A DNA stretch of 64,000 nucleotides, taken from the NCBI GenBank assembly GCA_029953675.1, contig JAMWBK010000003.1:1798001-1862000 (forward strand). The letters are read 5' to 3'. The position numbers and the translations under genes were made by a program. The notes beneath the pieces are model-generated. The model searched no databases and was not told the origin of the DNA. It was given only the letters and a program-made list of their open reading frames with translations. Of this stretch, positions 1 through 31,188 are shown in pieces. Every line of letters starts with the position of its first letter. Positions within the stretch are counted from its first letter, which is position 1. This stretch comes from Rhodosorus marinus CCMP1338. Its lineage: Eukaryota; Plantae; Rhodophyta.

Positions 1-282
1 ACGGACTTTAGGGGGACTGAAGGGGGGGGGAGCTGAGGGTGGGGAAGGTGGGGAAAAGGTGGGGGGGGAGGGGCGGTGGCAAAGGAGTAAGGAGTGAGCG
101 GGGGGACTAGAGCTTTTCTTTTATTATTTGTTGGCATAAAGATTTAGTTTGTGGTTTTATTGGGGTATATTGAGAAGCTGGGCAGGTAGAAAAGGGACGT
201 GAGAGGTTTTTTGTTTGTTTTGGGGGCCGTGCTGTGGGAGAGGGGAGAGGAAGAGAGCGGAGGTTTGGGAGAAAGTATTAGC

Positions 283-1458
283 ATGGTGAGGGTTAGGGTT
301 GAGGAAGTTCCGTCTTCGGAATGTGGTAGTTTTTTCGTGGAAGGAGGAGGTTTTGAGTTGGCTGGTTTGGAGGTTGTGAAGGAGATAACTGGAGCGTTTG
401 GTATTGAGGAAGGGGATTTTTTCTTGACGAAAGATGGGAGGCTGGTTGACGGTGGAGAATTTTTTGAGGATGGGTGTGTTCTTCGGCTTTGTGTCCGAGC
501 CCGGGGAGGGAAGGGCGGATTTGGTAGTATGCTTCGAGGGCAGGGTGGGGCGAAGAAAACAACAAACTTCACCGCTTGTAGAGACTTGTCTGGTCGGAGG
601 TTGAGGGCGTCTGACAATCAGGAGCGCTTGGCGACATGGAGGGAAGACCAGGATAAAAAAGCTGGCGAGAAGCGGAAGGCAGACGATGGTGAAGCGTCGA
701 CTTCGCGTTTGGCGGAGAAAACACCTGAATTCGATGCGGAAGGATTCCACGAGAAGCTTACGGCTGTTGGGGGAAGAATTTCTGAGGCACTGGAAAAGGG
801 TTTTCAGGAAGACGCAAAGAAATCTCAGTCTCAAAAAGTTGCCAAGGCCACTGAAGAACTGAAGACTAACAAGCTCCTGAAGAGACGACGAACGTACATG
901 GATGTCGACGACGATAGCGGCAGCGACGAAGAGGACGAGGATGTGAAGCTTGCACCAAAGCCGCAAGAGCTCGATGGAGGCTCTTCGAAACAAACTCCGT
1001 TACGGTTCGAAGCGCCTTCGAGGACTTCTCGAGAGCCTTCACCCATTGTCTCGTCTTTGGCGCAGTCCATTTCTACTGAGCCTGTGTCTGATTGTGGTGA
1101 CTCGTCATATGCCCATTCGGACCCAATCACCGAGCCCATTGCAGAAACAGAAGCGGTGGCGCAGCAGGCTACGGCTAGAGACATCGCGCAGGAAACAACT
1201 GCGCGAATCGTGAACGCTTCAAGTGTGGACGAAGGATCGGAGCCCAAGATCGATCTCAAGAGTTACGACTCGGCTTCTGCTCTAGAGAGCCTGGGCTTGG
1301 AATCGCTCAAACATGAGCTGTCCAGTCGAGGTCTGAAGTGCGGCGGAACTCTGCAGGAGAGAGCGAGCCGCCTATTCTTGTGCAAGGAAGCAGACCCTTC
1401 TTCACTCAATCCAAAGCACAGAGCACGTCCAAAGGCCAAGCCCCACGGCAGAGGCTAG
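283..1458 (+). CDS. SDE2: SDE2 replication-stress/splicing factor (ubiquitin-fold precursor with C-terminal SAP-like domain)
   Basis: Intronless ORF. It contains the diagnostic RARGG|KGGFGSMLR processing site followed by KKTTNFTACRDLSGRRLR, and a C-terminal LESLGLESLKHELSSRGLKCGGTLQERASRLF. First in-frame ATG is at 283; the ORF track start at 199 is a GTG. Confidence 0.93.
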   Translation: MVRVRVEEVPSSECGSFFVEGGGFELAGLEVVKEITGAFGIEEGDFFLTKDGRLVDGGEFFEDGCVLRLCVRARGGKGGFGSMLRGQGGAKKTTNFTACRDLSGRRLRASDNQERLATWREDQDKKAGEKRKADDGEASTSRLAEKTPEFDAEGFHEKLTAVGGRISEALEKGFQEDAKKSQSQKVAKATEELKTNKLLKRRRTYMDVDDDSGSDEEDEDVKLAPKPQELDGGSSKQTPLRFEAPSRTSREPSPIVSSLAQSISTEPVSDCGDSSYAHSDPITEPIAETEAVAQQATARDIAQETTARIVNASSVDEGSEPKIDLKSYDSASALESLGLESLKHELSSRGLKCGGTLQERASRLFLCKEADPSSLNPKHRARPKAKPHGRG

Positions 1459-1544
1459 CGCAACGGCATTGATCGAATGTATCAAGTTTTAATTAAAATA
1501 ATCGTACCCAGCACGTCTTTGCACCCTAAGAGAAAGTCACAACA

Positions 1545-2276
1545 TCAGTCTGTCTTATCGTGGCCATTCGTCTGCGCGTTGGTCTCCGTGCTCGCCGCTT
1601 GCGCCCGCATTTTCATCCTGCTAACTCGGATCGCCAACACCATCGTCCTCACGCTAAGGTTAACCTGGAAACGGAAGAACGCCGGTTGCATTGAGTTTAG
1701 AGTAGAGTACAATGCATGGCTAGAGGATCGGTATGCTTACTAGAATGACGTTTGCAATCAAAAGAAGCGGTCCAGCAAAAAAGATCATCGCGAAGAGCCC
1801 GTTTCTATCGAAATAGTTCTGCGTAGAGAATCTTGGCCAATTTTGTCTGCCCCAGTTGTTCAGCGGCTCCGCAAAGAAGACTGAGACAGCTTTGTGGGAG
1901 TTTACAAAGAAATTACAAAGACCAGGATTTAGTGTTTGAACATCCTGTTTTTGAACTACCGCGAAATTCTACTTTGAGGTTGAGGATGTTCCCTAGGGGG
2001 ATCCTCGGGCTTACCTATGAACACAAACCAAATAACCTGGAGCACGAGTTTTCTCCTTGAAACCAACACTCCGGTGAGGACGACAATCTGAAAAATAATC
2101 AGTCCAAGGATAAACGGTTCGCTCCAAGTGACAGACTCCACAAAGTCACTCAGCAAGTGCATAGGAGATTCGATCTGCTTCTCCATAGTGCCTAACAACG
2201 TATCCGCAAGGTGATACAACAACTCCACAGGCCCCATCTTGGACAGATCTCCCATATCCTCGAGGTTCAGGTCCAT
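1545..2276 (-). CDS. TMEM18: Transmembrane protein 18 family, 3 exons (2276-2015, 1889-1741, 1664-1545)
   Basis: The spliced product has WSEPFILGLIIFQ...AEPLNNWGRQNWPRFSTQNYFDRNGLFAMIFFAGPLLL, matching the TMEM18 pattern. Introns 2014-1890 and 1740-1665 are GTAAG...AG and keep frame. Confidence 0.88.
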
Positions 2277-4794
2277 ATCAGTTTTTCCTCCTACAACAAT
2301 AGTTCCTTCAAGTCTCAATAGTCACTATCAAACCCTGCCGAGCATCGACCTACCCCCACTCCTCAACACCCTAACTGGGCACCACTATGAAGAAAGCCTT
2401 CACTTGTGCGGATAATATTGACTATATCAATCGCTTATTCAATCAATATATTTCGTACATTTGTACAGCTCCGTTGTACTATAGTGTTCACTGTGATGAC
2501 CATGCTAGCCTCACTGAGCTCATTGAGAGACGTCTCTTTAGTCTTTCTTGGAACAACCTATGATATGTCATATCATACAATACATGTCATATGGTATAAT
2601 GAATAAAATAGATTAAGGCTTGGCACAAGTTTCAAAACAGAAGGCCGCCGCCAATAAAAGTTGAACCAAAACAAGATCCTAGAGGGTGGTCCTTCAGCCT
2701 CCCTCTGCTCTCTTCGTCAGGCTACTTCGGCTGATGCAGAACACCCGATGGAGTGTCTCTGGGGAGGCTCAGCTGGTGTTGCGAGGATTGACGCTGTCCG
2801 AGCGGACAAGTGAGAAAGGTGGCGGAAACGGAGCTCCAACATCAACAGTAGTGTGAGCCCCTCCTTAGTGGGCGAGTAACGAGCAGACAATACTTCAACA
2901 AAGGAGGTAGATTCCCCGGGTGTAGATTCCGCGAGAATTTGGGGCGCGAAGAAGACGGTGGATTTCGACGTCGGGGGATCAGTCATTCAAGAAGAATTTT
3001 TCGCGCTGAACTGATCCGCAAACATGTCAAGGACTGGTCGCATTCTGCATCTTTCTCCGGCCCGAAGCCCGGCAAATATGCACGCGGAGAGCCCACAACC
3101 AATGTTGTCGCCAAACATACGTTCGTTCAAACTGCATGAATTTCAGGGATAGCCAAGGACCTGAAAGGCGCATTGCGAAATTGGATTCCAAGCTCTGTCC
3201 CAGGAATCATCTGATCAGATCACTTCAATCCTGATTGAGATCGATTCACCACGTCAGAAGTGTATGCACAAGTGCCACTACTTGCTGACCGCATCAAGCA
3301 ACACCAGTCAGAAATTCTCGGACTAGACGGTGAAGAAGCCGAGAACGGCTGCCGGAAACTTCACAGAAACAAATACAGACTAAAGCAAATCAACCTCAAG
3401 CGCTTAAGCTTTTCGCAATCAACGAAGGAAACCTTCATTCGAACCCATCCCAAGAGGGTCTCCAAGCACAATTTCCATCCAGACAACTTCACCAGGACCC
3501 CCCCCAACCTGCAAGGAAGCCAACTAATTTTCGAAAAGAGCAAACGGTTACCGGACACAAGAAAAAATACCATTAAGGTCGGATGTCTTAACATCCAAAA
3601 TACGTCATAAACTATTTATCAAAAATACATAAGTTATATATATTTTTCTTCATAAAAATTTTGTTTTACAATCAAAATATATTTTAGTTAAGTACTTTAT
3701 ATTAATTTTATAATGGCACTAATATTGTCTCGCGGCCACGCCACCCAACCCCTCTTATCGCTGATTGAACAGGGGCGTGGATGCAATTCGGTGGTTGAAT
3801 TTCCATTTGATATAAGAACCCGTTCCAAAAACAATGAAATAATGATAAATCGTTTCGTACATGTGATAGTAAACGAGAACACAAAACTCGAAGGGGGGTG
3901 GGAGGGAGGGGTAAGGGGTTATTGGTTTCTATAGTAGATTTTTAAATTGTTTTCTAATTATTGGTTTATGGAATGGTTCCTTTTTTTTGTGCTCGGATTT
4001 TGCTTTTTTCCTACGATGAAGAGGACTTTTATGGTTTTCCAAACGTTGTCAAGAGGGGTAGGATCAAGTCATGGTTTGGATCGCCCAAAACATTCCAAAA
4101 GATATCGTTTTTTATTGTTGCACAAAAGTTTCGATGATCGACAGCGGCGGGTAGGGACATATCGTCCGAACGCTACCGGGGGGAAGGGGGCGGGAGGGGG
4201 TTAAAGTACAAGTTTGATTCATCTAACTCCCCATTCTTTACATATGTGAATAGTACAATATCGCCGAAAAAGAGTAAATTCAGAGCAGATATTTGATTTA
4301 ATATGATGATATACAAGGGGGGATATGATCATTCACCTTTTTTTTTTTTTTGGTCCGTTGATCAGGTGTTGTTTTTTTTGTTTTGGAAATTTTTGAGGTT
4401 TTTTTGCGGGCGGTTGGAGGTTTGTTTCTCAGGGCGTTGGGAGGGGCTTAGGGAGCTTCATTTTTATATTCTTTCTGAAGGGTATGGGTGCGGAGGTTTA
4501 GTTTTGAGTGTATTCGGTCAAAAAGGGTTATGAAATGTTCGTAAAGAGTTTTAGTTAAGTTGGGGCAGAGTATATGGACATGGGATGGGGCGGGAGGAAG
4601 TTCCGTGAACAAGATCGTACTGCTGAGAGGCGTTTGGTTTCGTGTTTTGGGTGAGGCGAGTTTGGTATTGGTTTTTTTTTTTGGTTGGATAGCCAGCCGC
4701 CTCCTGTGGTTTTGGTATTTTTTGCTCGGAATCGAGATCCCAGAAAAGTTGTGCTTTGGGTCGTGAGCGGACGTGCACATCTTCGGGGGAGAAG

Positions 4795-7248: not shown

Positions 7249-9247
7249 ATGGTGGATTGGAAGGCTCCCTTAGGATTTGGATTGTCGCCGTCGATCCTTG
7301 GGGCGAAGACGAGATCTGGAACTGGGTTACTTTGTAGCAGGATAAGAGCGGGGTCGTCTAGTTACCGACTGTACAGAAGCACGAATATGTGCTTAGCCTC
7401 GGAAGCGGAAGTGAAATCTGAGACGACGAAGATTGAGAGAATTAAAGTGCGGAGCATTCAGGAGGCAGAGGAATCTATTGTGGGCACCGAGGTCAAGGTG
7501 AACGGATGGCTACGCACTGTGAGGGATCAGAAGCAGTTTGCTTTCCTCAATATCAACGACGGATCAAGCTTGTCTGGTGTTCAAATAGTTGTAGATGGGT
7601 CCTCCGGATCGTATGATACTGCAAAGTCACTGACAACTGGGTCCTCTGTGTCCGTAGTTGGAACCGTGGTGAAAAGGTACGATATTGCATTCACCGACAG
7701 ATGCAAGTAGCTGAGAATTCTTACAAGGATTCTGATTCGATCGTTCAGTCCAGGGAAAGGCCAAAAGTATGAGATTCAGGCCAAGTCTCTCCACGTCTTT
7801 GGAACCGCCGACCAGTCATATCCACTGCAGAAGAAGCGGCACTCGTTTGAATTTCTCAGAGGTTAGACCTTGTTCAGTTCCTGTGCTTTGGATTATCCCA
7901 GTTTTTTAGTGTCTTCTTTTATCTGTTTTATTTGCCTTGATGCAGGAATTGCTCATCTCCGTGCCCGAACGAATGCAATCGGCGCTGTCGCTAGGGTTCG
8001 ATCTAGCCTTGCGTACAGCACCCACAAGTTCTTCTGCGATCGTGGGTTTGCTTATTTGAACAGTCCAATTCTAACTGCATCTGATGCGGAAGGCGCCGGC
8101 GAACTTTTTCAAGTGACCACTCTCCCTGTTGCGAAGCCAAAAGATATTAAGACCACAGATGCTGGAGAGGCGGATTTTGCGGAGGATTTCTTTGAGAAAC
8201 CAACGTTTTTGACAGTATCCGGGCAATTGTCGGCCGAGTCTTATGCGACTGCTCTGTCTGACGTGTATACGTTCGGTCCCACGTTTCGGGCTGAGAACAG
8301 CAATACTTCTCGCCATCTTGCTGAGTTTTGGATGGTTGAACCTGAAATGGCGTTTGCTGATCTGCAAGACGATATGGCAAATGCCGAAGCTTATGTTAAG
8401 TAAGCTTGACAAGATCTGTGCTCGTGTATTATCTCTCCGCGCAAATCTGCTGCCTGATATTAAGGTGTCCATTTTGTTGTTTCTCAAGGTATTGCATCAA
8501 CTACGTGATGGAGAACCACATGGAGGACGTAGAGTTCTTCAGCAAATTCGTCGAGAAGGGCCTAATGGAGAAATTAGAAACCGTCAGAAGTCAACCATTC
8601 GCGTACGTATCGTACACAGAAGCAGTCCAGATATTGCAGGAATCGAAAGAAAAGTTTGTCTTCCCCGTCGAATGGGGGACCGACCTACAGTCAGAGCACG
8701 AGCGGTACCTCGCGGAGAAGCATTTTCAAAGGCCTGTGTTTGTGTTCAACTACCCTGTCGGCATTAAGGTAACGTGGGCATCCTTGCACTATCAGACTTG
8801 TTTCAAAGGGCTGACATAGCGTTGTGTACTTCCCCAGGCGTTTTACATGAGACTCAACGATGATCAAAAGACTGTTGCTGCAATGGATCTTCTCGTGCCC
8901 GGTATTGGGGAGCTTGTTGGTGGAAGCCAGCGAGAGGAGAGATTGGATGTGTTGGAAAAGAGAATAGCGGACGCTGGACTGGAGAAGGTAGGGTTTGACA
9001 CATTACGACAATCGAGAAGAAGTATTCTATCCGAGTTGCTTTCGCTCTTCATTGGCACTGAACACGCGTGTTTGCTGAATGTTAACAGGAAGACTACTGG
9101 TGGTACCTCGAACTGCGAAAGTTTGGCACAGTCCCGCATGCCGGCTATGGTCTAGGATTTGAGCGACTTGTACAGTTCGTTACGGGAATGGACAACATTC
9201 GAGATGTCATTCCCTTCCCTAGACACCCGGGCAATGCCGAGTTCTGA
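7249..9247 (+). CDS. asnS: Asparaginyl-tRNA synthetase, organellar (bacterial-type) with N-terminal transit peptide; 6 exons
   Basis: Exons 7249-7676, 7749-7861, 7946-8399, 8489-8768, 8838-8987, 9089-9247. Motifs: [101 protein letters not shown]...IRDVIPFPR. An alternative in-frame ATG is at 7228. Confidence 0.97.
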
Positions 9248-9349
9248 CTGATTCGGTTAGGGCCCTTCTTCGCTGCAGAGTTTCTCTCTTTAATACCAAG
9301 TTCAATTTGTTGTTAAATATTTGCAATTACTTCAATGCGTTGTCATAAA

Positions 9350-10783
9350 TTATATCTTCGTAAGTTCCCGGAGGCATTCAACCAGATGTTCTTCATTGTA
9401 CAGAACTCGTTCTCCCTCTAGTATCGTGGGAACAGGAACGATGTCCGTAATCCCGAGCTGGGCAAGTCGATCGAAATCCACCTCAATTTCCCCTCCTTCC
9501 GGTACAATCATCGTCGTGACAAAGTCCTGGGGAGAATACGCTCTCTTCTGGCAAACCATCGCTTCCGTCAAGACCTCTGAGATTGCAAGGACCACATCAC
9601 TTGCCTTCATTTCACCATAGCTCCATCGCGTCTCACGGTCAAGCGTCGCGTTCAAAATCAGAATTTTGGAGACCGCCTTTTCTGATATGATGTCTCCAAC
9701 ACCGCGAAGAGCAAGAGTGGGCGCTATGCTGGTGAACAGGCTTCCCATCGAGTAGATAATGCTGTCACTGGAAACGAGAGAATCAACCACAGCAGGGTTT
9801 GGTTCTGGGTATCGCTCTGCCCCGTTATAAAAGATTCTCCTAATTTTGGAAGGGAGCGTCTGCAGTTTCGACTCCTCCGTCTTCCCTCCCGGATGCGAAA
9901 TCAAGTTCTGGCCATGCAGTAGCGTGCCATTCTCCAGTTCCGCGACTAGGGAAACCCGCTTTTCCGTTGAAATAGCTGGAAGCACCCTAACACCCTCATC
10001 CATTTTCAGCACACGTGATAGAATCAACGTTGCTGCCTATGTTCCGTAAGCGAGCAACAGACCCTCAGTCTCTTAACGAAATCTTCGCAAGCCCGAAAGG
10101 CTCACGCTTACCTCTAAGGATTTGAAGAAGCAGCGAGCTCCAGAAAGGAAGAAGTTCCCCACGGAGCCATTCCTAAAGTCGAACTGCTTGTCTCGGAGCT
10201 GGAATCTAAAATGCTCCAGAAAGGCGAGAATGGTCTCCCTGTACGGTTTTGCCACTGCGGTCCAAAGCTTATGAGACCCATCCAGTACGGAATGCCTAGT
10301 TGTCCACAAACGAGGGTTGAGAGCTCCACGGTTAGCAAGCTTTCCTGTGGTGTTCAAACATGTAGGCCTTTTCAACACGTACCATTCGTCTTCCGCCGTC
10401 TGCTGACTATCAGAGGACAATCTGTGACCAAGAATTTCCCTGACCGCGAGGGTCTCGGTATCTGTATCGTCCGAAAGCTGAACACATCTGGAACGAATAT
10501 CTCCAACCGCTGGCCCTCCAAGACATTTTATAATCTCCGAAGTTGACCCACCATCATCAGAAACTGGAAGCACGTAGCTAACCTTCAGCAAGGACTCCTC
10601 TCTCATCAACCTCGCGCATGAGTTAAATGCCGTTCCACCGCTGAAAATCACAAGCCGCCGCTCCGAATCAACCGACACACGCTCAAGATCCAGAATCTCA
10701 GCACCACGCACGGAACTCTTATATCCCCCAACACTCCCCATTTCACTCCCAAGACTCCCCATTTCACTGTCAAGGCTCCCCAT
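9350..10783 (-). CDS. YvcK/CofD-like (UPF0052, gluconeogenesis-factor family; plant MEE18 / yeast YNL011C type); 3 exons
   Basis: LVIFSGGTAFN, VLPVSDDGGSTSEI...GGPAVGDIRSR, FDFRNGSVGNFFLSGAR, IIYSMGSLFTSIAPTL...KILILN...DRET. Introns at 10382-10296 and 10111-10037. Confidence 0.9.
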
Positions 10784-10786
10784 CTC
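10724..10786 (-). repeat. Three 21-bp tandem units encoding EMGS(L/V)xS at the YvcK N-terminus
   Basis: Minus strand reads GAGATGGGGAGCCTTGACAGT GAAATGGGGAGTCTTGGGAGT GAAATGGGGAGTGTTGGGGGA. Confidence 0.85.
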
Positions 10787-12164
10787 ACATAGCTCCACCT
10801 TCCAAGAAATACGTGCCCTTTAACAACCAAACACAAAGCAACCCCCCTCAAAAAAAAAACAAAAAACCTCTTGACCAGACACCACAGCTCCTTCCAAACT
10901 CCTCCTCAACCCTCTTCCGACAACGTACCCACACACCTCTCTCTCTTCCCACCTACCATCATCACCAACACTTCCAGCTGAGCTCATCAAATCATCCTTA
11001 TCATGCTCAACAACAGCCTGCAGTCCTCATTGTGCCTCCTTTTCTTATATTACCCCCTCCTTCCCATCCCTTTTCATGCATTCCTTCACTGAAAGCCAGT
11101 CTACCCAACGGAGCCAGCCCAACATTGTCGGATCCCAAATTCTTAATTAGATACTACACAAAATATAAACTTATGAAAGAACGTAAAATTAGCCGTTCTT
11201 AATAAACCATAAATAACCTTTTTAAGAACTAGTATGGCCCTAGATTGTTCAACAACTCCACAATACGAGAATATATAGAAAGCACAATTCATTCTCGGGT
11301 CAAAATCTTGGTAAGTTTTAATACGCATAGAATTGCGAATACGTTTTTTTAATTATCGAACCTGATCGCACTGTTTTCATGGATAAATTATTTAAAAAAA
11401 CTATTTTTATTAAGCCAATATGTGAAGAGCAGAGAAAAGTTTTATCCAATCACAAGAGAACAGACACAAAAATCTTTTTCGAAGTACTACATTACCCCAA
11501 TTCCTGTATTTAATAAATATGTACTCCCTTTTCAAGTTCATTAGTTCGTACTAATATGTACTACTAACGTATCAAAATAGGATTTTTTGAAGGATTTTTT
11601 TTCCTCTTCAGTTGCCTTTTTGACGGCCCATTCCGTGTTCAGCTGCGTTTTTTTGTTTTTCGGTAAAATAAAACTGAACAAAGAAAGAAAACTCTGAAAT
11701 TGACTGACAAAAGTAAGGCATGTTTTTCTTCTACTAGATGAATTAGTTTCCGCCAATCGATTCGTTGATAGGAATTTTGTCACGGTTTGGTTCCCCTTTT
11801 TTTGGTTTCTTTTTCATGCCCCATCAATAGGCGTAGATTTGTTTTTTAAATTATTTATTTGATATCTTTGATATTTAAACTTTTTTCTGGATATTTACTG
11901 TTTCCTGTTTTCGGTGGTGGAATATTATAAACGTTAATATCGTGAGTGAGGTTAGGGGTTTTGTGTGAGATGGAATTGGTTCGCTGGGCGGGAGTATTCT
12001 GATTGTTGGAGTTGATCAGCCCTTGCGGCAGATCGTGTGGGGACTGGATCTCGGAGGCCCGGAGGCGGTTTCACTCTGACTGATTTGGTGACCCAATGTT
12101 GTTGTTTTTTGCCCTCCTCGTGGGATAGAATTTGACGACGTTTTTGGTCTGTTTTTTTTAATAG

Positions 12165-13000
12165 ATGGAATCTTTCTCAGAGCGCCGGATGGTCAGAGCG
12201 TTTTGGCCTAATCCTCATTGATCTGCTTAGGACTGTATCTCAGAGGTAGAGGTCGACTATACTGACTGGAGTGATTCCATCCTTGGTAGGATTGGATGAA
12301 ACAGATCGGTTTGCGGGGGGCCGGGACAGTACCCAGGTGTGTGCTATGAGAATTCTCAGCCTTCGAAAAACGGTGAGTCGACATGATGAGGCTGACTCCG
12401 CTATCTCAGAGCGCGAGGTTAGACATACTGACTGAAGTGATGCCATTTCACGGCGTCGTCGCACTGTGTGCTTCCTCGTTTGTTACTCATCTGACCCTAA
12501 TTGTTTGAGCAATCGAGCGAATGAGAAAATCGATCTGCCCGTAGGCATTGTATCTCAGAGCAAGTTGATTCCATCGCCCACGCACCAACTCAACTGCCCC
12601 TGCTACGTAGCTTCTTCCTGTTCAGATCTTTGAGTCTTCGAGCGTTCGACAGAAGCCGGCTGCGCGTTAGCGAAGTATCTCCGACAGGGTAGATTCCACC
12701 TTCACTTGTCGCATCGAAGTCTACCACGTTCGCTTTTAAAACTGATGCTTCGCGCGTTCGATCAGATCGAATGGATCTTTCACGAAACCGCTATCTCAGG
12801 TTCAGTCGAATTCACATCCGGTCGCATCATGTCAACTGCGAACTGCGACCAGCCAGACTTGTTGTTTTTCTGAACTCTCGTGATTGTTTGTGAGTCTTCG
12901 ACGAGAGCGAATCGATTAGCTTTTGAAGCCTGTATCTCGACAAGGGGGAGGTCATTCATAGACAGACTGAATTAATTCCACCCCTCACACATCCAATCAA
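12165..13000 (+). repeat. Diverged six-unit non-coding tandem array (unit about 115-165 bp)
   Basis: TATCTC recurs at 12236, 12402, 12551, 12676, 12792 and 12933. Each copy is preceded by a TTCG(A/C)GCG-like block and followed by GATTCC/GATGCC/GAATTC/AATTCC. Pairs of units also share GTCGCATC, TCAACTGC, TAGCTTC and TGAGTCTTCGA. Confidence 0.75.
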
Positions 13001-13329
13001 CGACCTAGCTTCGTACTTTTCCAACCTCGCTCGACTGTAGAGCACATGTCAAATACGAATCCATCTGCCTCAAGAACACAACCAGAGAGTTCAGGTTGAT
13101 ATCAAAACTAAAAAGTGATTCCATGAATTGCCGCAAGTCCGATTCTATATGTAGTACCCTCGTGGAATTTTCTACTTTTTTATACGAGATCTAAGTCCGT
13201 TAGAGCCTACAATACACCAATAAAGTACAGATGTGAACCACTGTGACGTAAAAGTTTCCTCAGAACATATAAGGTATGTTCTATCCCTATATCTAGAGTT
13301 TTCAGTTCTCGAAGGAAATTGCACTCAAT

Positions 13330-14460
13330 CGATAGATGAGTTCAGTCATATGGATGGTTGGTCTGACCAAAACACTCGGGCTGTCGACACGTTGTCCACC
13401 GATCTGCTCGTCTAAAACCGGACATCAAGAAATACATCTACATTCAGGATGTTAGCACATTCGCGGAAGCGCAGAGCCTTGCCCTGAAGATTGAAGGTGC
13501 GGAGATGGCGAGTGAACCAACTAGACGAGACGTCAAACCTCGCAGAAACCCGCATCAACCACCTTTGCGAGCATGAGTACACGCTCGGGCCGCACCAATC
13601 AGCCAGCAACCCAAGTCTCACAGAACCGCAGGTATACCAACATCATCTGCGACTTCTGTGGGAAGCGAAGCCATACCAAGCGGACACGCTGAGATAAATC
13701 CCGGCAGGGACCCGACAGTTTCCAAGTCGGCCCACCCTCTTACGCAGCAGTGTAATCGAACAGAGCAGCAACGGACGCCGCTGCTGCTGCCGAAACAGGC
13801 GTCCACAGCGGCCCTTTCGAAGGGAATATGACGGTGATGGCTGTGAACGGCAACGATCTTTCCTAGTTGTGGATTCACGATCACCTTGCACAAGATTTCA
13901 ATGGATGTGCCTGCTAAACGTGAATCTATAACTAGGGAAGCTCCTTGCGGTTGATTTTAATGGATGTGCCTAGTGAAGCCGCACCTTCAATCTTCAGCCC
14001 CAAGGCTCTGCGCTTCCGCGAATGTCGTAACATCCTGAATGTAGATGTGTTTCTTTCCTTGATGTCCGGTTTTAGCCCTCCCCTGAAGCAATTCCTCTGT
14101 ATCGGCGATTTCTCCAACCGAACGGTGAGACATCCGTTGATGAACGAGCTGTACGAGAAGGTGCTTCGTTCTTGGGCCCTTGCGAGCCGTTGTTATGCAC
14201 AGATCTTTGAGGCTTTGTTCAAGTCCGTCGAAAGTTTCTGGCCTTTTCTCCTGCGGTAGAAGGGACCACCAATAGGAAGCGTCCAACGATAGGTAGCCTT
14301 CAGCCGGGATCAATTTGTGCTCGTCCTCGTCTGCTTGTCTGCTGCTAGACGAGCCATTTCAATACAGTTCTTTAGGCTGTTCAGGAAGAAACTTATCTGC
14401 AGTTCTCTGGAGTTTTAATGCTGCTTTTTTGTTGGACGTCCTCAGTGTCTTCATTTCGCC
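13330..14460. mobile_element. Rearranged Ty3/gypsy LTR-retrotransposon relic (gag and protease fragments on both strands)
   Basis: Minus strand gag-like LSLDASYWWSLLPQEKRPETFDGLEQSLKDL...FRGGLKPDIK...IYIQDVTTFAEAQSL. Plus strand LKPDIKKYIYIQDVSTFAEAQSLALKIEG, and a frameshifted protease-like VNGND/FLVVDSRS at about 13840-13890. Stops and frameshifts throughout. Confidence 0.75.
13412..14075. repeat. Inverted repeat of about 95 bp (13412-13502 / 13979-14075)
   Basis: CTAAAACCGGACATCAAG...CTACATTCAGGATGTT...CATTCGCGGAAGCGCAGAGCCTTG...CTGAAGATTGAAGGTGCGG occurs on the plus strand and as its reverse complement, with few differences. Confidence 0.92.
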
Positions 14461-15428
14461 CTCCTGAGGGTAGGTCGGGTAGGTCTGCTCTGGCTAAATG
14501 ATGATGATGAAATTGGCCCCCCTCCCCGCTCACTAGAAACTCACTAGAAACTCTACCCAAACAGCCAAGCGTGGTAGGCTGGGTTTTATAGGCAGTTTGC
14601 TACAAAGTTTGGAAACTCTGAAAAGGTCACAATGCGGTGGTATACAAACAGTCAGCACTGATTTTGCACCTTCTTGACTCCACCAGCCGTTCACCACTCC
14701 GCTTACTACCTTCGAACCATGCGCGACTAGATGATACTTCGCTGTTTCTGGTCCAGAAGCTGTTACCCGGTTTCTTCGGAGTTGGAAGATGGCTCTCCGT
14801 ATTCCGCGGTCGCAACACATTGAAGCACGTTTCTCAACGCCGAGAAGCGCATCAGTGACATACAGACCTCGGCAGCCCTGGACAGACGATAGCTCGATTG
14901 AGGGACGAGCCCCCGCTATGAACACGAGTGAAGGATTGCTGCGTGGAGAAGAAACAGCTGGGCAGCCAGGTGATAACCAGGTTAAGAGACGAGCCCTACT
15001 CGCCTAACAGAATAGAAGGATCACGTTGGTGTAGCACGCTATACAGTCCAGGACATCCGGTAGCTCACTCAACAAAAGCGGTAAACTAAACGAAAAGATC
15101 ACCCGGAGGAGAGCAAAAGGGATTGCTAGAAACCGGCCAAAGACCGGTACAATCAAAAGGGAAGAACTATGCTATGGAAAGCAAAACAGTTATTCGACTG
15201 GTTGCCCCTACCTACTATACCAGCCGCGGCTCAGTCTTCCTCAGAGAAAAGATCTGCAGCTCTCTGGCAAATGCTCTGCGGAGGTGTATTGGCATTGCTG
15301 GAAGACGAGGTCCAATCCTTTGGGGAGGTTGAAGAAGGGCATTAAGGTAACACAAGCGGATCGTTTGGCATTTTGATGGATGATCGAGAATATCAGTCAA
15401 TAGAATACTTAAGTAAAACAAGCCACTG

Positions 15429-17065
15429 ATGGGGAAACGTAACAAGAAAGGTGGTAAGGGATAACAAGGACTAGAAAAACTATTGGATTTCAAGGATTGT
15501 TTACCAAAAAGTCGCGTTGACTAACCCCGACGTTGTGGTGTTTCTTCGCTTTTGTTTTCAGGACGAGGAGGAGGAGGAGGTTCTAGTTTACCTGCTGAAG
15601 ATGGAGAAGAAAACAACCAGCAAGATTATGCTCTGAATCATAGTGATTCATCTGCTGAATCTGACTTAGAGGAGCAGCTTGTGGATAAGAGGTTGGACTT
15701 CCTTTGCGAAGGAATTGTTGTCAAAATTTGCTAGATTTTCCGTTTCTCTGACAGTTTCTGCGTTGCCTATTTACCAGAGGCTTCATACGCATGGAGGCTT
15801 TGGAGGAGTTGGAAAAGATCCTTCGTCCATACTCTGAGACTCTACCTTTCCATTCGTAAGTAGCCGAATGAACGCTTTCATGGGAAGAAGCGGACGAGTT
15901 TAGCTCACTGTTGACAAGAAGAATCGCTACTCGAATACAGAGCCACGTCCGTTGCTGAGAAGCTCTGTCGAGTTTCCATAAGGCGTGGAGCTGACGAAGA
16001 ATCTGAAAAGGCGTGTAGACTTTTGGCGATGCTGTTCATCAACGAAGGCGATAATCCTGAGACTTCAGAGTTGTTCCACAAGGTGAAACCTGTTCTGCTC
16101 CAAAAGGGGGCTCCAGGCGCTTTGGAAGCTCTTGGAATGGCTTGTTTTGTTGGAGCAGAGGATGAAACGACGACGCTCAGAACAATGGCTAGCCTTGAGA
16201 GCTTCTTCACGAAAGCTGGACGGGCTGAGGCATTCACCATGGCCGCAGCGATTCGCGCTTGGACGCTGGTTGCCACGACATTGAGTCCGGATGTTCTTTT
16301 AGAGTATGTTCTTGGTGAACGTGGAAGAAGTGCTGGATTGGCAATCCGTCGATACGCAGTTAAAGAGATTCCTAAGGGCGAAGGGCCCCGAGATCTGAAG
16401 CTCGCGGCAACAGGGGCGCTATCCTTAGTCCTGGAGATGACCAGTACCGAGGAGGATTCCGATGAAGAGGAGGAAGACGAAGAAACGGACGGAGGAGATC
16501 TCACATCGTTTTCCAGTATTCAGGAGAGCATGACGGGTAGCTTGATTGACGCCGCGACCTCCCCGAAGATTCTGAGTCTTGCAAGTCTCGAAACAGCGCT
16601 GGATAGAGTCTCCGATGGTCTGTCGTCGGGAAGGAAAAAATTATCGAGCAAGGATAAAGCGTTGCGCAAGAAAATAGCGGCGGAACTCGAGTCAGATGTT
16701 GTGATTGAAATCGGGAACAGAGAGGTATGGAGAGCATTTGGTAATGAAAAGGTCCTCGCTGGCAAGGAGAATTCTTACAAGTTGCTTTGATTTTCTTGAT
16801 TTCCAACTGCAAGGTTGTTGAACTGTACAGACGGGTAGACCTCACTCGACTCAACGCGTTCCGCTCGATTCTAGAATCTGGATCTTCGGATCATTTGGCG
16901 TACAATCCACTTCTTCGAGACGTTTTTGAGCTCGGCGATCCTCCAGCCAGAGACGCCAGCGCGAATCCGAACAGTCGAAGGTACTTTGGGGACGAAAAGA
17001 CCCGTTCACGATCAAGAGCTGAGGGAAGGCAGTACAATAATACGCGAAATGAACTCTGGGACTGA
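15429..17065 (+). CDS. IFRD1: IFRD (interferon-related developmental regulator)-family protein; 5 exons
   Basis: Exons 15429-15453, 15562-15691, 15778-15855, 15941-16724, 16814-17065. MGKRNKKG start, DKRGFIRMEALEEL, SIRRGADEESEKACRLLAMLFI, AIRAWTLVATTL, LAATGALSLVLE, NPLLRDVFELG. Confidence 0.85.
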
Positions 17066-19328: not shown

Positions 19329-20940
19329 CTTTAACGCAGGAAAACTCGGGTGGGTCCACCCTACGATCCCCTTCCCCCCCAAAAAACTAAAACATCATCC
19401 AGCCTTGTTCTCCTGCACAAAAAAGCAAAAACAGGGACGCTCTCCGCTAACCCAGTAGATTCCAAGCGGAATAAAATCCAACGTGCTCTAAGTTACAAGG
19501 CTTTGGCCCCCCACAGCTCCACCTCCCACCCCCAACCGAAGCCCTTAAGACTATTCAGTTCTTACGTGCGGTTTTTAGCTTGTCAAAAGCCATCGGAGCC
19601 AAACTCTCCATCGATGGTCCAAACCTTTTTCAGTGATTATTTTAGTAGGGCCAAAGGTTCAGCAAATTGAGTGGCCAATGACACTTTCCCATCTGAAACA
19701 AAAAAATTAATTCTATTCATTCAGAGGATGAATCGATTGAATTTACGAATATTTTTTAAGGGGAGAATTTTTAATATATGATATTTCTTCTACGAAAAAT
19801 GAATGGATGGAATCGATACTCATTCGCTGCGATCTTTCTGGGACGATGGAGGGGGTGGATGGGGTTGTGGAGGTGAGGGGAAGAGGTACGTTCAGCCGCT
19901 GATGAGGAGGCTATTGCTATGGTACAAGGAGCAGCGATGTTATGAGTTCCTGGGGTAAAGATCGCCTTGGATGAATCTTCAGCGTTGCCGTACTCGCAGC
20001 GCTGGTGCTAGGTTGGAAACTAGCACTAGCGCAAAGACCAGTTGGAAACTCGTAATTTGCCAGCGTGACAAGCTCAACGTGATCACCCGCGTGCCCGATC
20101 TAAACCGCTGCAGGTCATCTGGTACAGATCCACTCTTTAAGAACCTTACCTGATGAAGATTCATTGCTGCCTTAAAATGCCACTAAAACCTTCATCTCAC
20201 AACAGTTCACCAGCTCCGAAATTTCTTGGCATGCTATCAACAAGCCGAAACAAGCACTCTGGATCGACTTAAGCACTGAAACCCACCCCTCCTACCAAAA
20301 AAGCAATAAAAAAGGAAAATCTAGGGTCTCAAGTACCAATAATGAAATCTTACCTTAAGCAAGCTAAAAAAACTTAAAGAACAACTCAAAACTGTTCCTG
20401 ACATCAGCATTCAAGAAATTAGCTCTAGATTTAAGAACAAATAATTCTAGAGTTTACTGATTGCATATTCAATCCATAGTTGATAATGATTGAATCTAGG
20501 CTCGTTGGTGGAGATTAGCTAAAATGCACGATTTGATGCTCTGAGCTAATATTTGTTTACTGGCGATCGGTTTCGGGATGGTTTTTTGAAGGGGAGGACG
20601 CATCGGTGGTGGAGGGGGTTGAGGCGGTAGGTTAGGGAGGTTGATGGTGGATATGTTGGACGGAGCACAAACTAGTTTTAGAATAGGGGGTGATTGAAGA
20701 GAAATATCTAGAGCCTTTGGGTTGTTGCGGTTGTTTGGGGAATGCGAGAAGCCGGACGGTGATGGAGTTGTGAGTGTGTTCCGGTGTCTCCTGTGGTGCT
20801 TAAATTTTCTTGTCCCGACCTTAGTCTCGTTTTTGAGCTTATAGTTTTCGTTGTGTTTCTTGGGTTGCTTGGGAAGGCTGGATAGTCTTGGTCCGTCTGA
20901 CGCAAGTTGTAGATGAAGGATATTATCGTTTGAATAGAAG

Positions 20941-23634: not shown

Positions 23635-26293
23635 GCCCGCCCCCTCAAACCCCACACGCAACTTCTCCTTCTCATCCAAGGAAAAAACCAAAACCAAAAA
23701 AATCTTAACTACCTCCAACAATGAGAAGAAGAAACCAAAAAGAACACACACTCAAACCAAAATGGTCTTTCTTCTCCTATTCTTCACTCTTCAAAGACTT
23801 TTCCACTACCCCAACTCTACCTCTAAATCCCACCATCCCCCTCCTCCCTCCTTTTTACCTCCATTATGTAGCGATGGATCTCCAAGGCACCGCTAGCTCA
23901 CACTTCCAAAACAAAAATCATTTTCGAAAAAACACTTCTTACGACTGCGAGGTAAAAAAAAAACAAAACCCGAAGAACCAAAAAAAACAAAACAAATTGG
24001 GCCAGACATAAATAAGCGTGCCCAATGTTACATGTTTACCCTCAGCAATAATTTTCACCAATTCAATACTAAGCTATTGGAACCTCAAAAATGAGCCCCA
24101 TTCTTACAAAACTCCTCATTTCCCCCAAAAAACAAAGAAAAAACTACAACGATCTGTATACAATCTCTCCCCTCCCCCCTCTTCCGTCATCCCGAAAACG
24201 AAATGACCAGCTAAGAGATGTACGAACATTTAATGATTAATATATAAAACTTTACTGAAAAAATTGGAACATTTTGGAAACTAAGGGGCTGGTAATCAAA
24301 AATGTAAAGGGGGGAAGAAGAGAGAGTTTCCTGTCCTTCGATTTGGGAGGCTTCCAGGAGATTTTTCTATTTCTTCTAAAATTTGTAAAAAACTGATGTC
24401 AGTTTGGGATTCGTCCAATTCATGCTAAAAAGCCAATGTTCTTTTCTCCCCCAGAGCTCCGAACAAAAATTCTTTCTCATGCAAAACGTTATAACCAAAT
24501 CAGTTTCTTATCCGTCCCCCAATTTTTTTCTTTTTTTTCTTCCAGGGGGGTTTCGGCTTTTCGCCAGTGTTCCTTTTTTTGTTAGTTTGTTTCCTACCCT
24601 TCAACATGTCCTCCATAAAATTATTGTTCTAATTTATTGAAGTTACTAGACGGTTTTGCTCCTTCCTCTACTTCAAGAATAGAAGGGGGTGTCTATTTGC
24701 ATGGAAATCGTTCTAATTCCACGCAGGACACTCATTATTGTTTTGAAAATAAATTAAATGGATCGTGAATTTTGGGTTTGTTTGACCATTCAGATGGAAG
24801 GTTGATTACATCTTCCTTTTTTATTTTGGTTTTTAATCGTTGTTTACAGTTTTTGGCCAATTATAGTAGTTTGCAGGATGCTCTACTGCCAATGGATTCT
24901 CGAATTCAGTTACAACGGAACGAATGACCTTGATGCATGTTAATAAGAAACACTGAATGGTGTTGGTAAGTGCACCCTATTTGTTGAGTATTGTTTTTTC
25001 TGTCACTAGAAATTTTAGGGTTCCTTACAGCTAAGTAACTTGTGACACCCTGACACCCTTGTTTTGATGAGGCGGAATTCTCGATTGTATTGCTGGAAGT
25101 TGAACGGGGGGGACCGGGATGAGAGGACGTCTGAGATTTGATCATCTGTATATTCCAGATACTTTCGGAAGAGTCTGCTCGTAAAGATCCCCTCGCAGGG
25201 TTCGAAAAGCGGCCAAGTAGTAGCATATATAGTAAGTCCTCTACTGCAGAAAGAGTTGAGAGCTCCTCCAGCTGGTTTCCATTTCAGGGCTCTCGATTGC
25301 GTCCATTGCACGGTGGTGAGAACGTCCGGTTTGCATTCTTTCGATTTCGATCCTGGAATCCTCCACTTGATCCTCCATTGCAGGTCTGAGATACACATAG
25401 TGGAACAAGTTGAAGAATCAATTTGGGCGGAGTCCTCCCGATATCAATTTGGCAAAAGAAGTGAAAGTTGTTATGTATGTCGACTCAAAAAGCAAACTGA
25501 TTCTACATCCAGTAGCATCTCAGCGGAGATACATGAGACTTGTGATCTTGAGTATGCGTTTAACTCCAACGATTTACTATCAAGGTCGACAACACCTGTT
25601 TCTGTTTCTAGTTTCTATCCACTGGAAGCTTATGATCATACGAAAGATTTCCGCAAAATGTGCTGCTGCAGTATTTCCTCCGCAGCTCTCGTGGGGTGAG
25701 AGTGATTCTTCCCGGTTCTTTCTTCGCGCATGTGGCGAATCTCGTCTCGCTTCAAGCTTCTCAGGGTAGATAGGCTCCGAATAAATTGTTGTTGTTGTCT
25801 TGGTCTTGGAAGCTGAATCTATTCTTATTCAGGCCGGGAACAACCAAACGGTTAAAGAGTCGTTTCGTACCGGTCCTTGTCAGGGCATCTGCCATGAAGG
25901 GTAGGGTAAGGCACGACCCGGGACAGCATCCAGTGGTTCAGATGCCATCACTCAACGGACAAGCCTCTTATGCAAGACAGGAATCAAAAGGGGTGATTCT
26001 TTTCCAACGAGCGGATGGAGCACAGCGAACGTCCGAAAAGCCCAGCCCGTACGCTTCTCTGATGGAAAAATATCTTGGAATCCCACGAGTCTTACCGCAG
26101 CTGTGCTCATAACCTGTCACGCACATTAATGCCTCACACCCGAACGGATGCAGATACTTTAACCAATCTATTCTGCCAAGTGCTATCTCCTTAATTTCAA
26201 CTTCTGCCGCCGGCTCTCCATGTGAACGAAAAATAAAACCTAGGGATATTGTGTGCCTCTAAACAGTGGGTTTCCTGAGAAGTTTATGAGCTG

Positions 26294-26712
26294 CATCAGT
26301 CTCCAACGGATAACTAATACAGAAAACCCCTGGCGCTATTCTAAGGCTGAGAGGTGCGGTCTAGACTAGAACAACACATTGGATGTACGGTTATGCCATT
26401 GGAGCCAGACTAGGTAAGCCCGACGTAGGTTGCTATGGCGGTCGCGGTAGCTTGTTGAAGCACGACGCTCGTGGGTTTGTAGTCCATAACCGCGTTTGTG
26501 TTCATCAGTCTCCACTACGGATAACCAATAAAGAAAAACCCCGGCTCTATTCCAAGCCTGAGAGGTGTGGTCTAGACTAGAACAACATATTGGATGTACG
26601 ATCGTGCCTTTTGGAGCCAGACTTGGTAATCCCGACATAGGTTGCTATGGCGGCCGCGGCAGCTTGTTTCAAGGAAGACGCTTGTAGGTTTGTAGTCCAT
26701 ACCCGCGTTTGT
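26294..26712. repeat. Tandem duplication of an about 210-bp unit (26294-26500 / 26503-26712)
   Basis: CATCAGTCTCCA...GGATAAC...AAAACCCC...GAGAGGTG.GGTCTAGACTAGAACAACA.ATTGGATGTACG...GGAGCCAGACT.GGTAA.CCCGAC.TAGGTTGCTATGGCGG...TTTGTAGTCCATA.CCGCGTTTGTG occurs twice, roughly 85% identical by eye. Confidence 0.92.
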
Positions 26713-26952
26713 GGAGCGATTCCTGTCCCAGATCGCGGCAGAAAACTTCGCCTATTTCAAAGTTTTGTCCGAAACCACAAACCTCTGTAATGCTCCAACA
26801 CCACGGGGTTGGAGAGTGAACATGACTTGGGTGGGCAGGGCGGGGGTGGGAGAGAGGAAGAGTTTAAGGAAACTGAAGAGGAGAAGGAAATCAACCTAAG
26901 GACTATATGGGATAGAAAATGTAGAAGTTCAGTAGATGAGAACTTCAGGTTG

Positions 26953-30261: not shown

Positions 30262-30553
30262 CTAGATCACATCGTTGCTTTGACCAGAACGGGCAAAGGC
30301 CATGGACTTTGTGCACCCATCTCGTCTTCCTTCAGGAGAAGCCCCTAAAAAATCGTGCAAGCAGGGCCGCATTCAGTGCTCCAAAGTTCGCTTTTTTCAC
30401 AGAGCGCAGTAACGAGATCATCAGAACTAGTGCTGTCATACCATCATCCTTTCGAATGAGAAGCATATCAACAGCCCTCCGACGCTCTGACTTGACGCTC
30501 TTTTGTCGAACCAAACCAGTCACTTCTCCCCACATCGCAATGCGCCGTTGCAT
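30262..30553 (-). CDS. Possible 64-aa two-exon microprotein divergent from COX6B
   Basis: ATG at 30553, intron GTATGA...TTTTTAG at 30441-30345, stop at 30262. No homology recognised. Confidence 0.25.
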
Positions 30554-31188
30554 TAAAACGGTATTTTTCAACTCTTCCTTTTTGACTGTATCAGTCAAAA
30601 TAGACGCGAATATTTCTCACATTTTTGGAATTGCTTCTATCAACCTAATTACATATATAGACATGATTGGTAGAAGTGATACTTGATCAACTGATGGTTG
30701 GTTAATATATATTAAACGACAGTAATAATAAAAACTGCATGCGTTACCCCGCAGTTACACCTCTACAATCACTCAATGCGGGTTAAATACCCCTGGTATG
30801 AAAAGAGCCATGATCTGAATTTTGGTTTTTAAAATTACAAAAAGTAAATAATTATGAATGAGTGTTAATATGGACAGAGGGGATTAGAGAAGGAAGGGAT
30901 AGTACTTGATCGCCTGCAGCAGTGGATAGTGGTTTCATAGAAGACTTGCATTGAACAATGTTTTGAAACATATAGTCAATTTATATTTTCATTGATTGAA
31001 TTTGTCAACGATGTGATCGAGCATGTTGGATCTTCCCTGCCTTGGAGGCAGCGAAGAAGCTGTGAATTGGGTGTTAAGGGGGGAGGGGTGGGTGCGGGTG
31101 GGTGGTGAGGAGGGGACGATTAGGAAGTAGTGGAGGTACTGCCGATATCCTAGGAAAGCGTTTATTTCTTTCTAGTTGAAGTGGAGAA

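Follow-up and report, generated by a model that had tools for sequence, protein, structure and literature searches.

A diverged, non-coding tandem array with two short conserved motifs in the red alga Rhodosorus marinus: a modest candidate row of binding sites

A stretch of the Rhodosorus marinus nuclear genome without annotated genes contains an array of head-to-tail, strongly diverged units that do not code for protein and share no fold, that are unevenly conserved, and that begin beside a nucleotide skew of the promoter type. The reading toward which we tentatively lean is that of a non-coding, probably transcribed and locally amplified array, in which two motifs are repeated candidate binding sites. 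Transcription, binding, and any effect on the neighboring genes are what we infer from the sequence, and the array is best regarded as a modest candidate for a row of such sites. Almost equally likely is a neutral relic: a ~140-bp segment would long ago have been amplified by slippage or unequal exchange and would have been decaying ever since without any role, the surviving motifs being due to luck or to local differences in mutation rate.

The window analyzed is the whole 64-kb stretch taken from nuclear contig JAMWBK010000003.1 of strain CCMP1338. There is no annotated gene between positions 10784 and 15428, and the array lies inside this 4.6-kb gap. A CofD-like gene is found on one side, on the minus strand with its ATG at 10783, and on the other side the next plus-strand gene is IFRD, with its ATG at 15429. 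The CofD-like neighbor has only distant relatives (46% identity), and the single contig inspected for such a relative holds 49 nt upstream of the gene. A search for literature on Rhodosorus non-coding RNAs found none.

The array extends from ~12040 to 13125. Six of its units are clear, a decayed one lies at either end, and the period is 116-186 bp. The hexamer TATCTC starts at 12236, 12402, 12551, 12676, 12792, and 12933, and the six units described in an earlier note on this DNA are confirmed, with (G/C)TATCTC at 12235/12236, 12401, 12550, 12675, 12791, and 12932 and spacings of 166, 149, 125, 116, and 141. The units are as follows:

12042-12100, plus strand: degenerate unit 0, GGATCTCGGAGG ... 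TCTGACTGATTT, a profile match
12183-12285, plus strand: unit 1, long form, with TATCTCAGAG at 12236, ACTGACTGGAGT at 12261, and GATTCCATC at 12273
12368-12450, plus strand: unit 2, long form, with TATCTCAGAG at 12402, ACTGACTGAAGT at 12427, and GATGCCAT at 12439
12503-12578, plus strand: unit 3, short form, with ATCGAGCGAATG at 12512, ATCGATCTGC at 12529, TATCTCAGAG at 12551, and GATTCCATC at 12567
12627-12702, plus strand: unit 4, short form, with TTCGAGCGTTCG at 12637, TATCTCCG at 12676, and GATTCCACC at 12692
12739-12815, plus strand: unit 5, short form, with TTCGCGCGTTCG at 12749, TATCTCAG at 12792, and GAATTCAC at 12808
12888-12986, plus strand: unit 6, long form, with ATCGATTAGC at 12911, TATCTCGA at 12933, ACAGACTGAATT at 12962, and AATTCCACC at 12974
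13047-13125, plus strand: degenerate unit 7, with ATCCATCTGC at 13059, ACCAGAGAG at ~13085, and GATTCCATG at 13117, from direct repeats and from motif and profile matches

Homology covers entire units, spacers included. The units are nevertheless very diverged, with pairwise identities of 38-64%, and divergence amounts to about one substitution per site. Leave-one-out profile searches recover units 1 (E = 0.0018) and 6 (E = 0.0048), recover units 3 (0.17) and 2 (0.44) weakly, and miss units 4 and 5. Unit 0 is the best non-training match of the long-form unit profile across the window (E = 0.024 for the region, 0.87 for the window). No second copy of the unit is found within the 64-kb window, and a pattern scan of the JGI metagenomes returned just two single-motif chance matches. 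The resemblance formerly pointed out at 25354-25395 is at chance level (E = 6.4 against the unit profile). The proposed first block, TTCG(A/C)GCG(T/A)(T/A)(C/T)G, is weaker than claimed, being exact in only two of the six units and within two mismatches in three. The GATTCCA block is also weaker, being exact in three units and within one mismatch in five of six. The AATAAA at 13219 is present but at chance level, with 27 plus-strand copies in the window; only 4 of 13 genes have an AATAAA no more than 400 nt downstream of their stop codon.

What stands out in the array is TATCTC, the most clustered hexamer of the window, with 6 of its 18 plus-strand copies lying within 700 bp (p ~4e-7 per hexamer, ~2e-3 once corrected for all hexamers). 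It is invariant in all six units, while the remainder of the units differs by 43-61%. When uniform decay is simulated on a tree derived from the remaining columns, none of 20,000 simulations yields an invariant run of at least 6, and the probability estimated conservatively from the share of invariant columns is ~3e-3. Without alignment, the expectation for the motif excess from the k-mer spectrum is ~0.03. The claim that blocks are preserved against their spacers is borne out for TATCTC, whose retention exceeds what uniform neutral decay would leave (p roughly 0.003-0.03). This result is moderate and not decisive, and it depends on an alignment of very diverged units that were themselves first found via TATCTC. 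Typical minisatellites are homogenized or decay evenly. Even decay across the unit is not what is seen here, again at moderate strength.

The second motif, GATTCCAYC, follows TATCTC(AG) in a fixed order and at two classes of distance: 16 nt in units 3-5, and 37, 37, and 41 nt in units 1, 2, and 6. Allowing one mismatch, 9 of the 39 matches in the window fall inside 11916-13125 (1.2 kb), six of them direct and three inverted. The inverted ones all lie in the leader, three within 260 bp where ~0.06 are expected:

11916-11924, minus strand: inverted GATTCCAYC-like site, reading TATTCCACC on the minus strand, from the motif scan
11969-11977, minus strand: inverted GATTCCAYC-like site, reading AATTCCATC on the minus strand, from the motif scan and inverted repeats
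12164-12182, no strand assigned: exact inverted GATTCCATC (plus-strand reading GATGGAATC), directly followed by TTTCTCAGAG

In the last of these, TTTCTCAGAG is a variant of the TATCTCAGAG block, and the inverted site forms the 5′ arm of a 9-bp stem. This inverted repeat (12164/12273), reported previously, does exist, but at chance level, such repeats occurring at 0.69 per kb. Inverted copies of the second motif are not a product of head-to-tail duplication alone. For both TATCTC and GATTCCAYC, local density is well above background, as in homotypic clusters. GATA or GARP as names for the sites are a guess.

These observations bear directly on the neutral relic. Low unit identity, the failure of leave-one-out profiles to recover two of the six units, end units more decayed than those in the middle, and a motif excess of only ~0.03 without alignment are all consistent with simple decay. 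An invariant hexamer in six units is unlikely under uniform decay. The cluster of inverted second-motif copies in the adjoining leader also speaks against a relic, as does the fact that so old an array, 1 kb in length, has persisted in a genome as compact as 31 Mb (genome size from PMC10250338).

Around the start of the array, the nucleotide composition resembles that found upstream of genes in the window:

11051-12000, no strand assigned: AT-rich island, 63-76% AT, separating the array from the CofD-like gene
11800-12200, plus strand: G+T-skewed leader signature (skew +0.26 to +0.44), without annotated gene

The G+T skew changes sign across the island, and the leader of the CofD-like gene is the mirror image of that of the array, with a skew of -0.40 to -0.58 at 10700-10999. 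Other AT-rich islands in the window are likewise flanked by mirrored pairs of skew. Upstream of the ATG, the sense-strand G+T skew is ~+0.16 to +0.58 in 15 of the 17 genes of the window. The AT-rich core formerly proposed is recovered by measurement, and so is a leader resembling those that precede verified genes. Neither array motif is enriched in the other leaders of the window. A scan for bacterial promoters and terminators was set aside as irrelevant to a eukaryote.

An ATG normally follows such a leader signature, and the array could be a protein-coding gene that contains an internal repeat and has decayed or been overlooked. The plus-strand frame 12016-13191 is indeed poor in stops (6 in 300 codons over 12100-13000, about the 5th percentile of shuffles), and its codon score of -0.03 is the least negative among the non-coding stretches tested. 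That score is however far below those of real genes (at least +0.12). TATCTC occurs in three phases among the units, whose lengths are not divisible by three, and no repeated peptide is found in the array. A six-frame Pfam search gives no match in 11900-13900. The genome annotation, made by BRAKER trained on RNA-seq (PMC10250338), called no gene at the array. When the six frames of the array were joined into a synthetic query, no homologue was found among proteins, a result uninformative for R. marinus itself, since a control 337-aa protein of the window was not returned either. Exact look-up of nine ORFs of the array and its flanks found none on record in a protein collection that holds no other R. 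marinus data, and in which the cluster of the control protein has a single member. With phases that differ, a non-coding codon score, and no Pfam match, the absence of a credible ORF and of a conserved frame is upheld, and a coding origin is very improbable.

The array might alternatively be a polycistronic small-RNA precursor, as the earlier note had suggested, with one snoRNA, tRNA-like RNA, or miRNA released per unit. The unit spacing of 116-166 nt would suit snoRNA clusters of the plant type. In C/D snoRNAs, a C box (RUGAUGA) close to the 5′ end and a D box (CUGA) close to the 3′ end are brought together by a short terminal stem; the guide consists of 10-21 nt complementary to rRNA and ends beside the D or D′ box. 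Unit 2 does have a perfect C box (ATGATGA at 12384), a D box (CTGA at 12431), and a 4-bp terminal stem, and it weakly matches the archaeal sR51. These boxes are confined to one unit, however, and CTGA is missing between the motifs of the short units. Our own C/D-box scan of 11900-13300 gives one candidate per strand, unit 2 being the one on the plus strand. This is close to the background of 8 and 10 per strand over the 64-kb window, and the C/D-like pair of unit 2 is at chance level. Rfam gives 0 matches at gathering scores over the whole window; at E ≤ 10, only chance matches appear in 11700-13400, with sR51 at E = 4.4 and 16 bits as against a gathering score of 38, and even then the tRNA model (RF00005) has no match in the array region. 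ARAGORN finds no tRNA at default thresholds, and when relaxed it gives 5.7 matches per kb against a background of 3.6, none of them coinciding with the units. Motif spacings of 16 or 37-41 nt are moreover shorter than those of tRNA boxes. Unit folds are no more stable than shuffles on either strand (z-scores -1.35 to +0.83). Among 104 sliding-window folds, the mean z is +0.10, with a single unusually stable stretch of 100 nt on the minus strand (12500-12599, z = -3.2). For the six units together, RNAalifold predicts 0 pairs, with an energy of 0 and an empty consensus structure. The proposal of a small-RNA precursor is not supported by these searches, and it too is highly unlikely. An intron module (GTGAGT ... 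CTGAC ... TATCTCAG) was also considered and rejected: a GT start occurs in only two of the six units, and the likely real introns nearby (CofD-like, ACP, and TMEM18 candidates) are ~75 nt long and start with GTAAG or GTACG.

The surroundings of the array contain remains of transposons. A gag relic lies on the plus strand at 13415-13498, 290 nt downstream of the array. A zinc-knuckle-like CDFCGKRSHTKR follows at 13648-13683 on the same strand, with the downstream gag relics, and another relic is found on the minus strand at 13987-14313. The gap has an inverted pair of gag fragments, and also a gag ORF related to Retrotrans_gag proteins, for which there are no word-index matches and two weak full-HMMER matches. 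A 4.6-kb gap with dead gag pieces is a setting where neutral junk is expected. The proximity of these relics on both strands is compatible with the array being an internal tandem repeat of a transposable element (in an LTR or 5′ UTR, for example). It might also be a nuclear copy (NUMT) of the constant region of the mitochondrial minicircles of this species, accessions OK643888-OK643971. For the genome, a repeat content of 15% is reported, along with many NUMTs and minicircle constant regions that carry tandem repeats (PMC10250338). The supplements of that paper were searched for NUMT coordinates and give none. Against both origins, the unit is single-locus in the window, no LTR-like long direct or terminal repeats surround the array (10800-15500), and the six-frame Pfam search of 11900-13900 reveals no fragment of a reverse-transcriptase or mitochondrial gene. 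That the units have diverged so far speaks against recent import. The gag pieces nearby are truncated and stand apart from the array; the one on the plus strand lacks its 5′ end, so that gag does not run on from the array. The possibility that the units are decayed copies of a common transposon or coding repeat, which the earlier note had named as an outcome that would refute it, came out negative in the 64-kb window and the protein databases, and an imported repeat is unlikely. The gag fragments and gag-related ORF also favor the neutral relic, as do the lack of structure, coding signal, or homologue for the array and a younger tandem duplication at 26294-26713. This duplication lies in a similar unannotated stretch and has no evident role.

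For the candidate row of binding sites, the following course of events can be proposed. An old tandem duplication of ~140 bp would have been made in place. The array would begin in the plus-strand half of a two-sided promoter region, the other half of which would serve the CofD-like gene, and because the array starts within the plus half, transcription is probably on the plus strand. The transcript may be a non-coding RNA of its own or a long 5′ leader of IFRD. Neither protein nor folded small RNAs would be made from it, and what would have been retained are the two short linear motifs, with GATTCCAYC 16 or ~37-41 nt after TATCTC(AG). The array would thereby offer a row of sites at which one or two sequence-specific factors dock, whether on the DNA, where similar sites would form a cluster, or on the RNA, which would act as a NORAD-like platform.

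Comparison with known systems helps in weighing these possibilities. The repeat units of the lncRNA NORAD carry PUMILIO response elements (PMC8192489). Tandem diverged units with short linear motifs kept and no ORF are what is found in the array as well: in both, head-to-tail diverged units are separated by spacers, only short linear motifs are well kept (protein-binding in NORAD, putative in the array), and there is a promoter of their own, or at least a promoter-like signature in the case of the array. NORAD differs in being 5.3 kb long, abundant, and conserved across mammals, with known binding proteins, while the array is only ~1 kb; NORAD units are also predicted to fold alike, whereas those of the array show no shared fold. 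That the array forms the main part of a lncRNA or long mRNA leader made of two-motif docking modules in this red alga, titrating or recruiting a sequence-specific factor in the manner of NORAD, is rather unlikely.

Homotypic clusters of transcription factor sites and tandem-repeat enhancers resemble the array in having a motif enriched far above background and in both orientations, and such clusters likewise adjoin a promoter, with a second motif paired at few distances. In the array, however, the whole ~140-bp unit is duplicated rather than single sites turning over, and the sites are downstream of the inferred start site. With minisatellites or decayed local duplications, the array shares head-to-tail units of 0.1-0.2 kb, full-unit homology, a single locus, and unit lengths that vary through indels, but its divergence is near saturation and yet one hexamer is invariant and the second motif nearly so. 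Finally, plant-type polycistronic C/D snoRNA clusters also have an independent promoter-like region, even units of ~120-170 nt, and no ORF. The array differs from them in that only one unit has boxes and a terminal stem, its conserved blocks do not resemble such boxes, and Rfam gives no match.

To our knowledge, almost nothing has been described of red-algal regulation or non-coding RNA of this kind. Were the motifs real binding sites, the array would offer a compact and testable entry into red-algal gene regulation or non-coding RNA function, and as a lncRNA of docking modules it would be, as far as we could find, the first repeat-built regulatory RNA in Rhodophyta. As a neutral relic, it would be an ordinary finding. 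The AT-rich island with its mirrored G+T-rich leaders looks like a simple and general marker for the start of transcription units in this genome, and the signature could improve the annotation of R. marinus.

The array lies on the plus strand of nuclear contig JAMWBK010000003.1 (window position plus 1,798,000, orientation unchanged) in the R. marinus CCMP1338 assembly (GCA_029953675.1; PMC10250338), in a gap (10784-15428) where the deposited annotation has no gene, between two annotated neighbors:

9350-10783, minus strand, CofD-like gene
from 15429, plus strand, IFRD, the next gene after the CofD-like one

The earlier note had placed (G/C)TATCTC at six positions, and both these and their spacings are borne out. 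TATCTC is the most locally clustered hexamer of all in the 64 kb, with 6 of its 18 plus-strand copies falling within 700 bp. The first block described there, TTCG[AC]GCG..., is exact in two units and inexact in the others. Full-length alignment reveals that the spacers are homologous too (for example in the pieces ...TCAACTGC..., ...CTAGCTTC... and ...TTGAG...), and the array is thus a true head-to-tail duplication, more than a row of motifs. The six units (u1-u6) are highly diverged, with 38-64% identity over aligned columns; in leave-one-out profile searches, u1 and u6 come back with significant scores and u2 and u3 with weak ones, and u4 and u5 are missed. There are two unit forms. Between TATCTC and the second motif, GATTCCAYC, units u1, u2, and u6 carry an additional 21-25 nt (...GAGGT...ACTGACTGRAGT), and the distance between motif starts is 37-41 nt in these and 16 nt in u3-u5. 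The top other match in the window for the long-form (u1, u2, u6) profile is at 12042-12087, and fragments of one more unit are found at 13047-13125, so the array extends over about 12040-13125. The repeat is genuine and non-coding, and it stands behind a credible promoter signature.

That the array holds no credible ORF is upheld by phase, peptide, codon-score, and Pfam tests, all of them non-coding. A coding array was rejected: TATCTC occurs in three phases with no repeated peptide, and the best frame has 6 stops per 300 codons (about the 5th percentile of shuffles) and a codon score of -0.03, vs at least +0.12 in real genes. There are no Pfam matches in the six frames of the region, and a coding remnant is highly improbable. 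An intron module (GTGAGT...CTGAC...CAG) was also rejected, since it is present in only two units and does not resemble the probable introns of the neighborhood (about 75 nt, with GTAAG or GTACG at the start).

The polycistronic small-RNA precursor proposed from the sequence finds no backing in RNA family, C/D cluster, stable hairpins, or consensus structure. The array matches no known RNA family and has no tRNA-like element, and its units have no consensus secondary structure. A C/D snoRNA cluster was rejected because the boxes are in unit 2 only, at a near-background rate, as were stable hairpins in each unit. On the minus strand over unit 3 (12500-12599), there is a long imperfect hairpin of -35.2 kcal/mol (z=-3.2, 0 of 200 shuffles), which the other units lack. 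The 9-bp stem ascribed to unit 1 is at chance level, as such inverted repeats (9 bp, within 110 nt) have a frequency of 0.69 per kb, and the fold that uses it is ordinary (z=-1.35). We consider such a precursor very unlikely.

The two motifs were set against uniform decay, simulated on a tree calculated from the columns outside the motifs (total length about 2.7 substitutions per site). No simulation out of 20,000 gave an invariant run of six, and 0.045% gave one of five; the conservative estimate from the 18% invariant columns observed is about 3e-3. In an alignment-free count, the expectation for one hexamer shared by all six units is about 0.03, and the hexamers common to at least four units are all inside the two motif blocks. 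GATTCCAYC has 39 matches in the window with at most one mismatch, nine of them in 11916-13125 (six direct within the array, three inverted in the preceding 260 bp), and four of the window's five perfect copies are in 12164-12700. This sequence pattern is moderate evidence that the two motifs have been retained for a reason, with the caveats that the motif itself was used to find the units and that their alignment is uncertain. Our best-supported working reading, held at somewhat below an even chance, is that the array is a row of repeated putative binding sites in DNA that is probably transcribed. The rival reading, a neutral remnant left by an old duplication, is nearly as probable; import, a small-RNA precursor, and a coding remnant trail both. 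The closest known analogues would be NORAD-type repeat-built lncRNAs (PMC8192489) and homotypic site clusters.

The G/T-rich leader reported before the array is a real and general feature of genes here, sense-strand skew being found before most ATGs. In 11 of the 13 annotated genes, the 200-400 nt leading up to the ATG show a G+T excess between about +0.2 and +0.58, and in the last 200 nt the skew is at least +0.16 in 15 of 17 (the 13 plus four inferred from ORFs); in coding regions it is near 0 to +0.14. Such leaders reach 200-600 nt before the ATG, with G-runs, GGTGGG, and TTTGGT. Examples are:

10784-11100, minus strand
23635-24200, minus strand
4300-4794, plus strand
20500-20940, plus strand
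45909-46200, minus strand

The G+T leader gives a simple, strand-specific sign of where a transcription unit starts. The AT-rich islands are:

3401-4100
11051-12000
23851-25050
30551-31050
33151-33950
46551-47100
57901-58700

Against a genomic GC content of about 48%, these islands are at least 63% AT; they are 0.5-1.2 kb long and follow one another at intervals of a few to about 13 kb, most at gene starts. The skew changes sign across most of them (3.4-4.1, 11.05-12.0, 23.85-25.05, 33.15-33.95, and 46.55-47.1 kb). In fission yeast, similar intergenic A+T-rich islands mark replication origins (PMC7574548, PMC3446301); those here may simply be two-sided promoters.

Of the two flanks of the island at the array, the left (10700-10999) has a skew of -0.40 to -0.58 and is that of the CofD-like gene. 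The right (11800-12199) has one of +0.32 to +0.44 and no gene to go with it; we infer that this skewed stretch is transcribed. Only IFRD (15429) and PPR (26953) lack a leader of their own next to the annotated ATG (+0.05); an AT-rich island is found 2-3.5 kb to the left of each, with unannotated DNA in the interval. It follows that the array could be a non-coding unit in its own right or a stretch of a long IFRD leader. AATAAA is at chance level, with 27 plus-strand copies in the window and one at most 400 nt past the stop in only 4 of 13 genes. TMEM18 has a minus-strand leader signature about 1 kb before its ATG, at 3300-3599; this and the two leaderless genes might be explained by long 5' leaders, by non-coding units missing from the annotation, or by gene models that are incomplete. 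A young tandem duplication of 2 x ~210 bp (26294-26500 / 26503-26713, 86.7% identical) is found just upstream of PPR, within another 3.3 kb that lack annotation (23635-26952), again to the right of an island.

Directly downstream of the array are dead LTR-retrotransposon gag pieces in both orientations:

13412-13502 (plus) and 13979-14075 (minus), gag inverted pair, 88.7% identical
13648-13683, plus strand, degenerate CCHC zinc-knuckle-like CDFCGKRSHTKR
13987-14313, minus strand, gag-related ORF of 108 aa, with two gag-like proteins as relatives (E=6e-5, E=1e-4)

One of these two relatives has a Pfam Retrotrans_gag match (4e-9). NUMTs are abundant in this alga, and mitochondrial minicircle constant regions contain tandem repeats (PMC10250338). 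The array is not enclosed by long terminal repeats, and the plus-strand gag piece has its 5' end cut off; array and relics are thus not directly linked. We consider an imported TE or NUMT repeat unlikely. A six-frame query with the array gave no match, its internal control likewise not being returned, and a metagenome scan gave two matches, both chance. The motif pair suggested at 25354-25395 is also at chance level (E=6.4 against the unit profile). The closest CofD relative is 46% identical, and its contig has no DNA upstream of the gene.

Further along, two copies of a dispersed direct repeat (49933-50111 / 51926-52095, 85% identity, separated by about 2 kb) lie on either side of a self-complementary, palindromic segment of 449 bp (50903-51328, 78%); this could be a transposable element or the scar left by a rearrangement. 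The 5' end of the CofD-like coding region contains a 21-bp tandem repeat (10727-10788, three copies, 87% matches) that translates to MGSLDSE / MGSLGSE / MGSVGG. The tail-to-tail pairing of the CofD-like gene with tRNA-synt_2, a class II aminoacyl-tRNA synthetase (7249-10783), recurs on a metagenome contig (JGI 3300016877, Ga0186273_100721; 1-3248), where the distant CofD relative is 46% identical and intron-free.
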